The notes under the pieces were generated by a model. It did no database searches and was not told the DNA's origin. It saw only the letters and a program-made list of their open reading frames with translations. 64,000 bases of DNA, from contig NW_027192202.1 of the NCBI RefSeq assembly GCF_041956535.1, positions 33,259-97,258 on the forward strand. The letters run 5' to 3'. The position numbers and the translations under genes are program-made. Below are positions 120 to 2,503 of the stretch, piece after piece. This DNA is from Calcarisporiella thermophila CBS 279.70 (Eukaryota > Fungi > Calcarisporiellomycota). How positions within the stretch are numbered: the first letter of the stretch is position 1; the number at the start of each line of letters is the position of its first letter.

Positions 120-230
120 GCTCCCGTAGCTCAGTTGGTTAGAGCGTGATGCTTATGGGAGTTCGGATTGGTGGGAAAACACCTATTTGGAGTCACATCA
201 AAGTCGCGGGTTCGACTCCCGCCGGGAGCA
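120..230 (+). tRNA. tRNA-Ile (anticodon UAU) with 37-nt intron (158-194)
   Basis: Acceptor stem GCTCCCG/CGGGAGC plus discriminator A; D-arm TAGCTCAGTTGGTTAGAGC; anticodon stem TGATG/CATCA with TAT at 154-156; intron after position 37; T-loop GGTTCGACTC. Confidence 0.95.
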
Positions 231-235: not shown

Positions 236-447
236 AGTTTTTTTTATTCGGAACATTTTCGCTAGATTTGAAGAGTTGTATATCATTTGTTTATTATTAA
301 AAAAGGCAGATATATCCAATAATGCAATGTAAACTATCAAATCATTGAAATACTAAACATTATAATAGCTTATTACTTTTAATAGCGCAACTATGTTCTC
401 ATTATGTATGCATTCAAAAGATTAATATGCAAATATACGTCTAATCA

Positions 448-1352
448 TTACTTTTCTTCTTCTTCGAGTAGCTGAGTCAGAGTGCCACTATCGCCTCCAC
501 TGTTTTGTGTCCGGTCCACATTGCCCTAATCAATAATAAAGGGCAAGAGTAAATCTCTATCTACCTGAGACTTGATTTTTTTTCAGATAATTTACCACCC
601 CGATTTGTTGATCGCCGCTCACCCTGTTACTCCCACCGATAGCAATACCCCGTTTGTTTTTAGGCTCTTTTAACTCAGCTATATTCTGGTTCATACTGCC
701 GCTAGCAATGCCGTGATTTTCAGTCTTGGAGATTTCATTCTGTAGTGCAAATTAGATTCGATTAGTGAACACCTTCACTATTGCTTAGTTTCTATTTAAA
801 CTTACCGTGCCAATTTGCTCATTGCCACCAACAAGATTATCGCCATTGAAGTTGATGCTGCGCTTTTTCTCTTCCACTGTGTTCAGGTTTTGGTTCAAGC
901 TTCCACTGCCTGTACCAGAGTTATTTGACTGGGCTATTTCGTTCTATTTGGTCAAAAATGATTTTTAGTATTCAAGTCTGTTTCTTTGAAGTGGCCCGCA
1001 TGCTTGACTTACGGAGGCAATTTGCTGGTCCCCACCAATCTTATTATCCCCATAGATACTAATACCGCGCTTGAAATTGAGACCTTTGTCACGCATATCT
1101 TGATTTAGACTGGTTCCAGTTCCACTGTTAGAGAGATTATTCTAAAAAATAAACAATTCGTTGTTAATCCAACGCTTCCTTCTGGCTTGAAAACACTCTT
1201 ATCCTTTTTTTACTTACAGAGCCGATCTGCGTGTTTCCAGCAATGTTGTTGGGACCCGCGATTTGAATACCGCGTTCAATTACTACCGGCGCCGGCAGGG
1301 CAGAAACACAGACAGCAGCAATGGAGATTCCAATAAAAGAGGTGAATTTCAT
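448..1352 (-). CDS. Secreted Kex2-processed repeat protein (207 aa, 5 exons: 1352-1218, 1141-1013, 943-806, 739-596, 525-448)
   Basis: Manual splicing at four GT..AG phase-0 introns gives an open frame: signal peptide MKFTSFIGISIAAVCVSA, then four repeats starting after ER/KR/KR/KR, ending LLEEEEK-stop. Confidence 0.9.
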
Positions 1353-1458: not shown

Positions 1459-2503
1459 CTTTGCCTGATATCTTCCAGGTCAAGGCGAAGAGTTGGTTTT
1501 ATCCAATAGCTTCAAGAAACTCCAAGACATATTATGTTCTAGTGTTCCCCAAATTAAAGTCATATTTGTCGAAATCCCTCATGGTTTTCAATTTATTATC
1601 CGAGATCTACAATGATTGCCTAAAGATGGCAAAAATCGGAGGGGATATCACATGTGTGTATAAGCCACCTTGTTGGGACAAAGAGAGATTCGTTGCACTG
1701 GTAAAACTTAGCATGTGCCGTGGTGAAAAGGCAAGGCAGAAACGCGGCTAATCTTTACAAAAATAGAGGATCATGAAGGGAGTGTCCTTTATAGCATATT
1801 TAGAGCTGTTAGATCCTCCTATAGAAAAAAAACAACCCGAGCTATGAAACTGGCAGGGCTCAGTTAATTTTAATGGCAACCGAATACAGCCGAGGGCTTT
1901 CTAAAACTGGCACACACAATCAGTAGAATCTGGATGGTGCTTGATTCATTTATTCTGACTTGCTTCGAGTAAAAAGATTTCGCGATTTGAGGACGTACTA
2001 AGGATGCTATTAAAGTCCCTGAGTACAATGGTTTTAGTTTTTCATTATTTTTCTTCAGGTTCTTGACCTGAATGAGAAGATAACAATTGAGGTATAAACA
2101 TCATTAGACGTTATTGAATACGAGCTTTGCCATGGGAAAAAGTGCATTTCATATGATTTGGTTTCTCTGACTGATATCAGCGTGCAGTTCCTTAAAATAT
2201 TCTTCAACAGGAGTGCACTACCAATGATACTAGTTTTTGGAAAAACCAAAGAAATCATAACTCTCTTTTCCGTAGCAATTTTAATATGATATTATTAATG
2301 TAGAGCTTTGTTGAATTAGTATAAGTCTCTTCAACTCTTTGTGAATGACTAGTCAATAATGCCTACTTCAAAGGTTTAGACGCGATGGTATTGTTAAATA
2401 AGCAAACCAAATAGTTATGGTATTTGGGGTCTGTTGAATTGAGAGTAATACAGTAAAACACAAAATTATTAAAGTTTGTATATATATCTAGGTGTCTATT
2501 GCT

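Follow-up and report, generated by a model that had tools for sequence, protein, structure and literature searches.

A gene on the minus strand of the DNA analyzed here (the window, 64,000 nucleotides from Calcarisporiella thermophila) encodes a secreted precursor of four related repeats, and the same repeat doubles as the single N-terminal module of 15 other secreted proteins of this fungus. By its sequence, the precursor is a Kex2-processed repeat protein (KEP) as defined in PMC6339444, a known class; the second use of its repeat is new here. This distribution suggests that the module is a shared surface tag, one that probably self-assembles. The gene structure, the family, the selection acting on it, the conserved cut site and the promoter motif described below are read from sequence.

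Structure of the precursor gene

The gene model comprises five exons that join in frame into a product of 207 aa followed by TAA (Table 1). All four introns are GT..AG, three of them with GTAAGT donors, and each splits a repeat after residue 18; the joint background frequency of four such in-register donor/acceptor pairs is ∼5e-17, a rough, post hoc estimate. The predicted family junction is used by NCBI models in seven of eight annotated paralogues, at the same codon boundary as in the precursor in six of them and nine bases earlier in the seventh. Hydropathy indicates a signal peptide with a basic residue 2 and a hydrophobic core up to about residue 18. The second half of module 1, in exon 2, is 4 aa shorter than the consensus. 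Protein collections holding eight paralogues returned no record of the 207-aa four-repeat product, and the precursor gene itself, like several paralogues, is probably without annotation. The sequence evidence nevertheless indicates a real gene with predicted splicing, and the in-frame exons, splice sites and repeat scores bear out the preliminary description of a spliced precursor with a signal peptide, four repeats and three KR sites.

The neighboring genes are unremarkable: an intron-containing tRNA, a LYR-family protein, DHFR and a ubiquitin protease. The tRNA, at window positions 120-230 (Rfam RF00005, 58.9 bits), faces the 3' end of the gene and was missed by ARAGORN in bacterial mode.

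Table 1. Predicted features of the precursor gene, in window coordinates.
Feature	Position	Strand	Description
GGCAAA, distal copy	1628..1633	unspecified	-281
GGCAAA, proximal copy	1460..1465	minus	-113, 8 nt upstream of the TATA box
TATA box, TATATAAA	1450..1457	minus	∼-105; predicted from sequence
Exon 1	1218..1352	minus	45 aa: signal peptide (∼aa 1-18), short pro-piece with VIER at its end, module 1 (first half)
Kex2-type site ahead of module 1, ER (non-canonical)	1272..1277	minus	ER also precedes the module in three paralogues
Intron 1	1142..1217	minus	76 nt, phase 0
Exon 2	1013..1141	minus	43 aa: module 1 (second half), linker, KR at 1072-1067, module 2 (first half)
Intron 2	944..1012	minus	69 nt, phase 0
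Exon 3	806..943	minus	46 aa: module 2 (second half), linker, KR at 865-860, module 3 (first half)
Intron 3	740..805	minus	66 nt, phase 0
Exon 4	596..739	minus	48 aa: module 3 (second half), linker, KR at 655-650, module 4 (first half)
Intron 4	526..595	minus	70 nt, phase 0
Exon 5	448..525	minus	25 aa + TAA: module 4 (second half), short acidic tail
AATAAA, candidate polyadenylation signal	290..295	minus	∼155 nt past the stop; predicted from sequence

Repeats and cleavage sites of the precursor

The four repeats are rich in N/G/S/Q, measure 43-48 aa and are separated by three KR sites (aa 69, 115 and 163). All six repeat pairs exceed 5000 shuffles (scores 58-110 vs a shuffled mean of 27.6, sd 5.4, max 54), and the copies are 40-53% identical to one another where measured. 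The first cut site, VIER, is not dibasic and matches the extended Kex2 motif, in which the P1 Arg is invariant, P2 may be Glu and P4 is aliphatic (PMC8528282). The precursor thus combines a signal peptide, three or more internal repeats in the 8-100 aa range and Kex2 sites between them, as KEPs do; on the strict reading of PMC7329392 (at least three repeats, each between KR/KK/RK/RR), only repeats 2 and 3 are canonically flanked on both sides, as repeat 1 starts at ER and repeat 4 ends at the C-terminus.

From established Kex2 biology, we infer that Kex2 cleavage releases four peptides. The predicted products after Kex1 trimming, with N-termini expected at aa 28, 71, 117 and 165, are 41, 43, 46 and 43 aa long (4.2-4.9 kDa, net charge 0 to -4), contain no Cys, and are hydrophilic and acidic, with a GRAVY of -0.6 to -0.9. 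No Ste13-type XA/XP dipeptides follow the precursor cut sites. The genome encodes six kexin P-domain genes, one with the Kex2 architecture; together with the signal peptide, the four repeats and the three KR sites, these genes agree with the Kex2 polyprotein anatomy proposed earlier. The six genes lie on contigs C5, C7, C17 and C19, two pairs being convergent, and the gene on C19 is ∼3.3 kb from the module-only gene. This kexin expansion occurs alongside many Kex2 polyproteins in the C. thermophila genome.

A module family with diverse cargo

Profile searches of the C. thermophila genome (28.2 Mb, 116 contigs) detect 19 copies of the module, distributed over 16 genes; a further copy, on contig 28, is diverged and intronless. 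In all 15 genes other than the precursor, the module is full, single-copy and located at the mature N-terminus. It spans 38 residues, with conserved positions I2, I4, G6, N8, V10, G12, Q14, Q15 and I16 in the first half and N19, N26, G28, G32, L34, N35 and Q36 in the second. Arg immediately precedes the module in 18 of the 19 copies, with K (11), E (4), R (2) or P (1) at P2, all Kex2-tolerated; the one remaining copy has KR two residues earlier.

A phase-0 intron interrupts 17 of the 19 copies at a common position; one copy carries its intron three codons earlier and one has none. The introns of the precursor's four repeats are no longer alignable, and a tree of the modules, with 15 of 16 branches open, is compatible with or without a tandem origin of these repeats. 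In the module-only gene (VTP21DRAFT_4036; L057:1426-1500), the intron sits nine bases upstream of where the family has it, possibly through intron sliding, and two module copies besides this one are without an intron. A paralogue on contig 41 (L027:3682-3810, minus strand) carries a degenerate extra first half-module ahead of KR, a possible tandem-duplication intermediate.

What follows the module varies widely. Five genes are nearly module-only, with tails of 3-24 aa, the smallest precursor (P0009, 66 aa) consisting of a signal, RR, the module and three acidic residues. Nine genes carry tails of 42-300 aa or more with Ser/Thr/Pro-rich, Cys-containing repeats. One gene encodes a complete phage-type poly-gamma-glutamate hydrolase (PF05908, E 6e-43) behind the module, up to 38% identical to Bacillus phage enzymes; hydrolases of this type have been reported in just two fungi (PMC4497714). 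KR or RR directly after the module is absent in nine of these ten cargo proteins. None of the ten, each read to its first stop, shows a GPI-type C-terminal hydrophobic stretch (later exons could add an anchor).

The hydrolase gene (VTP21DRAFT_10800) lies on contig C7 (∼1,228,200-1,229,200; L030:3327-4211), and by eye its product contains motifs resembling zinc and catalytic residues; the same contig holds three module genes inside 12 kb. A two-Cys unit (Cys, 11-13 residues, Cys, often then Thr-Thr/Leu-Tyr-Tyr) recurs in the stalks of four module genes (L034, L031, L033) and has no Pfam match.

Selection and sequence pattern of the module

The module is under purifying selection: across the 16 full-length copies, pS is 0.84 (saturated) and pN 0.32, and pS exceeds pN in all 120 pairs. 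Between the repeats of the precursor, pN is 0.24-0.39 and pS 0.72-0.88. Conservation alternates in the first half (0.88 at even positions 2-16 vs 0.48 at odd ones, p 0.001), and the hydrophobic moment is highest at 180 degrees (1.6, compared with 0.6 at 100). The composition is 59% N/G/S/Q with 0.5% Pro, 0.5% aromatic residues and no Cys (counted in the 16 full-length copies). Beta-arch amyloid motifs are described as marked by N/Q ladders and Gly turns (PMC7885112), and the module sequence is consistent with a beta-arch-like pattern, a pattern being something short of a demonstration. The earlier reading of an N/Q/G beta-arc-like pattern therefore stands, supported by alternate-residue conservation, the 180-degree moment and N/G/S/Q richness. 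N-glycosylation sequons occur in many copies and could hinder stacking. An internal two-fold repeat was rejected, the halves not being detectable pseudo-repeats (1.3%), and AlphaFold gives no structure for a single module (pLDDT 60, pTM 0.15).

A shared promoter motif

The hexamer GGCAAA is found, on either strand, in the 300-nt upstream regions of 15 of the 17 family genes vs 11 of 115 AT-rich controls (Fisher p 4e-11), the controls being ORF-based upstream regions rather than curated promoters and the family promoters being related by descent, though introns and silent sites are fully diverged. It ranks first among all 6-mers, and its p value is matched by none of 2000 random sets. Ten of the 14 TATA-bearing family promoters place it at most 60 nt upstream of the TATA box vs 1 of 62 controls. 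We read this shared motif as a sign of probable co-regulation.

Relatives outside the species and tests of known families

No outside homologue of the module was found in Pfam, NCBIfam, PHROGs or PDB sequences, in ESM Atlas feature searches, in word searches of 5.8 billion proteins, in phages and plasmids, or in metagenome contigs and prokaryote genomes (scans sensitive to close relatives only), all blanks being subject to two limits, a short query of low complexity and the introns of fungal genomes that are unannotated. Among 1.84 billion representative proteins, the module profile, built in its second half mostly from one sequence and less sensitive for that reason, gave nine matches, eight of them C. 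thermophila's own. The module family is so far seen in one species. A match to a characterized family, named at the outset as a refuting outcome, did not appear in the searches run.

The ninth match is a phage tail-type metagenome protein, P0008 (L062:1612-5220), with an S74 chaperone domain and 21-aa repeats that align with the first 19 positions of the module (HHalign 86%); the second half of the module has no counterpart there. The repeat region is predicted to fold as a beta-solenoid (pLDDT 77; Z 9-11 and rmsd <3 Å to several beta-helix proteins). The predicted solenoid also matches unnamed viral clusters (TM 0.85-0.89). P0008 is the best stray match of 1.84 billion, and its score adds up nine repeats of low complexity; convergence and kinship are equally likely, and the modeled fold suggests just that module-like sequence can form a beta rung.

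Membership in four known families was rejected. The curlin repeat signature S-x5-Q-x-G-x-G-N-x-A-x3-Q is absent in 19 of 19 modules and there is no Pfam match. The G-(I/V)-Q-(I/V)-G core of RHIM/PP motifs is likewise absent in 19 of 19, and PF12721 has no match at the module loci. For chaplins, there is no Pfam or NCBIfam match, no Cys in the 16 full-length modules and no hydrophobic character. The precursor lacks the eight-Cys pattern of hydrophobins, its mature peptides having no Cys. No known amyloid family among those searched shows similarity to the module. The genome itself contains three hydrophobin matches (L066:1342-1743, L067:1489-1869, L068), of which the two that were read both have eight Cys and a signal peptide; since C. 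thermophila has hydrophobins, the module need not replace them, which weakens the initial suggestion of a hydrophobin substitute. Two promoters of these matches were checked and both are without GGCAAA.

A model for module function

Assembly, co-assembly and surface location of the module are what we infer beyond the sequence. In the reading that we consider best, and to which we give an even chance, the module stacks into a surface polymer, and the family comprises bulk subunits and tagged cargo, the module being a co-assembling coat subunit and a display tag. The gene product would be a pre-pro-polyprotein. Golgi kexin would cut after VIER and after each of the three KR sites, with Kex1 then trimming the basic ends to leave four peptides of 41-46 aa, while the same kind of cut would expose the module at the mature N-terminus of the 15 other secreted proteins. 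On the hyphal or spore surface, modules would stack as beta-arches, in a cross-beta fibril or an intermolecular beta-solenoid. Free copies, from the polyprotein and the five near-module-only genes, would form the bulk polymer, and tagged proteins would co-assemble with it, displaying Ser/Thr/Pro/Cys stalks and the poly-gamma-glutamate hydrolase without a GPI anchor. That stalks lacking an anchor, an enzyme and peptides free of cargo all bear one tag is best explained by copies binding each other or a common wall target. Against a polymer, the peptides are hydrophilic and acidic, unlike a water-repellent coat. The fuller version, a co-regulated, lineage-specific fiber display in which a Kex2-exposed 38-aa amyloid module builds the bulk fiber and holds tagged cargo on the wall without GPI or covalent anchors, is a tentative proposal that may well prove wrong.

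A non-polymerizing docking tag would account for the family anatomy (N-terminal tag, varied cargo, no GPI) equally well. Here the module, as a monomer or small oligomer, would bind a wall polysaccharide or one wall protein, and free copies would compete with tagged proteins or mask them. The hydrophilic, glycosylatable sequence fits docking somewhat better than a polymer, and the lack of a predicted structure for the single module is in line with it. Most carbohydrate-binding modules contain aromatics or Cys, whereas this module has almost no aromatics and no Cys. Strict alternate-residue conservation with N/Q/G, a stacked beta-arch pattern (PMC7885112), fits docking less well, and bulk supply from a polyprotein is in keeping with a structural subunit; on balance, we consider docking unlikely.

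It is improbable that the precursor stays uncleaved or partly cleaved, its four modules folding together into a single intramolecular beta-solenoid, a nucleus or cap for the polymer. Four tandem beta-arch-like units, a non-canonical first site and the solenoid predicted for the look-alike tandem repeat of P0008 would all suit such a fold, but the three canonical KR sites have stayed in register despite diverged linkers, introns and synonymous sites, and the same kind of site precedes single modules.

We give equally poor prospects to peptides that, once released, act as antimicrobials or diffusible signals in the manner of alpha-pheromone or Ece1 products. The preliminary description had listed a signaling peptide among its possibilities, and both the classic KEP layout (PMC6339444) and the presence in the family of an enzyme against a Bacillus polymer are compatible with that. 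It is disfavored because ten paralogues carry the module on large cargo, nine without a processing site after it; in most long paralogues the module stays fused to 40-300 aa. Moreover, the precursor copies have only the limited identity given above, the peptides are acidic rather than helical-amphipathic, and Ste13-type dipeptides are missing after the sites. For RiPP maturation, a DUF3328/UstYa search gave no match in the genome or beside the precursor, the positive controls in the genome search being silent as well.

A silent or decaying gene, its model an artifact of in-silico splicing, would explain the missing 207-aa record and the 4-aa deletion in module 1, but is very improbable given the open frame through five exons with consensus splice sites, the purifying selection between precursor repeats, and the TATA box with two family promoter motifs.

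Significance

Most KEPs have no known function, and Coprinopsis KEP knock-outs showed no phenotype (PMC9769878). Reuse of the module as a tag at the N-terminus of stalks and of an enzyme, together with the promoter motif, offers a direct and cheap test of the role of one KEP peptide and makes the present case more informative than most KEPs. Should the module co-assemble, it would give an early-diverging lineage of fungi a new way of attaching proteins to the cell surface and would offer a thermophile-derived display tag of 38 aa; the family is known so far from one species, which limits generality. Fiber display, if true, would amount to a natural equivalent, in a fungus, of engineered curli display.

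Comparison with known systems

KEPs share a layout of a signal peptide and at least three internal repeats with KR sites between them, and are common in Mucoromycota at about nine per strain (PMC6339444, PMC7329392). The present precursor differs in that its repeat is also the single N-terminal module of 15 non-repeat secreted proteins, with no outside homologue found.

Like curli CsgA, the module is N/Q/G/S-rich and Cys-free, with an alternating pattern and ∼20-residue half-units. However, the CsgA repeat signature is missing and the profile-profile probability is 0.2%, so that the curli kinship suggested at the outset is not supported, also for want of a Pfam match. The RHIM/PP amyloid motifs (PMC7885112) are loosely alike, with hydrophobic-x-hydrophobic-Gly and then Asn, twice, but these motifs are cytosolic and the module is secreted.

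The Streptomyces chaplins ChpA-H (PMC3079736) are alike in architecture only: a ∼40-aa secreted domain occurs alone in short forms or on longer proteins, in a multi-gene family thought to co-polymerize. Unlike chaplins, the module family has no conserved Cys pair and no sortase anchor, appears to rely on Kex2 release, and has long forms that carry cargo and seem to be without a covalent anchor.

In Ustilago maydis, Kex2-released Rep1 peptides of 34-53 aa form a wall amyloid (PMC3133707). The precursor has four repeats rather than the 12 or 17 of Rep1/Hum3, its peptides are hydrophilic and acidic, and Rep1 is likened to it by architecture, not by sequence comparison, with no Ustilago protein among the module search matches. 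The precursor shares with Rep1 and Hum3 (PMC3133707, PMC4617103) the form of a Kex2-cut polyprotein with peptides of similar size, and Hum3 links such repeats to another domain (PMC4617103). By this analogy, the precursor may work like Rep1, and the family as a whole may resemble both the short and long chaplins and the Ustilago repellents.
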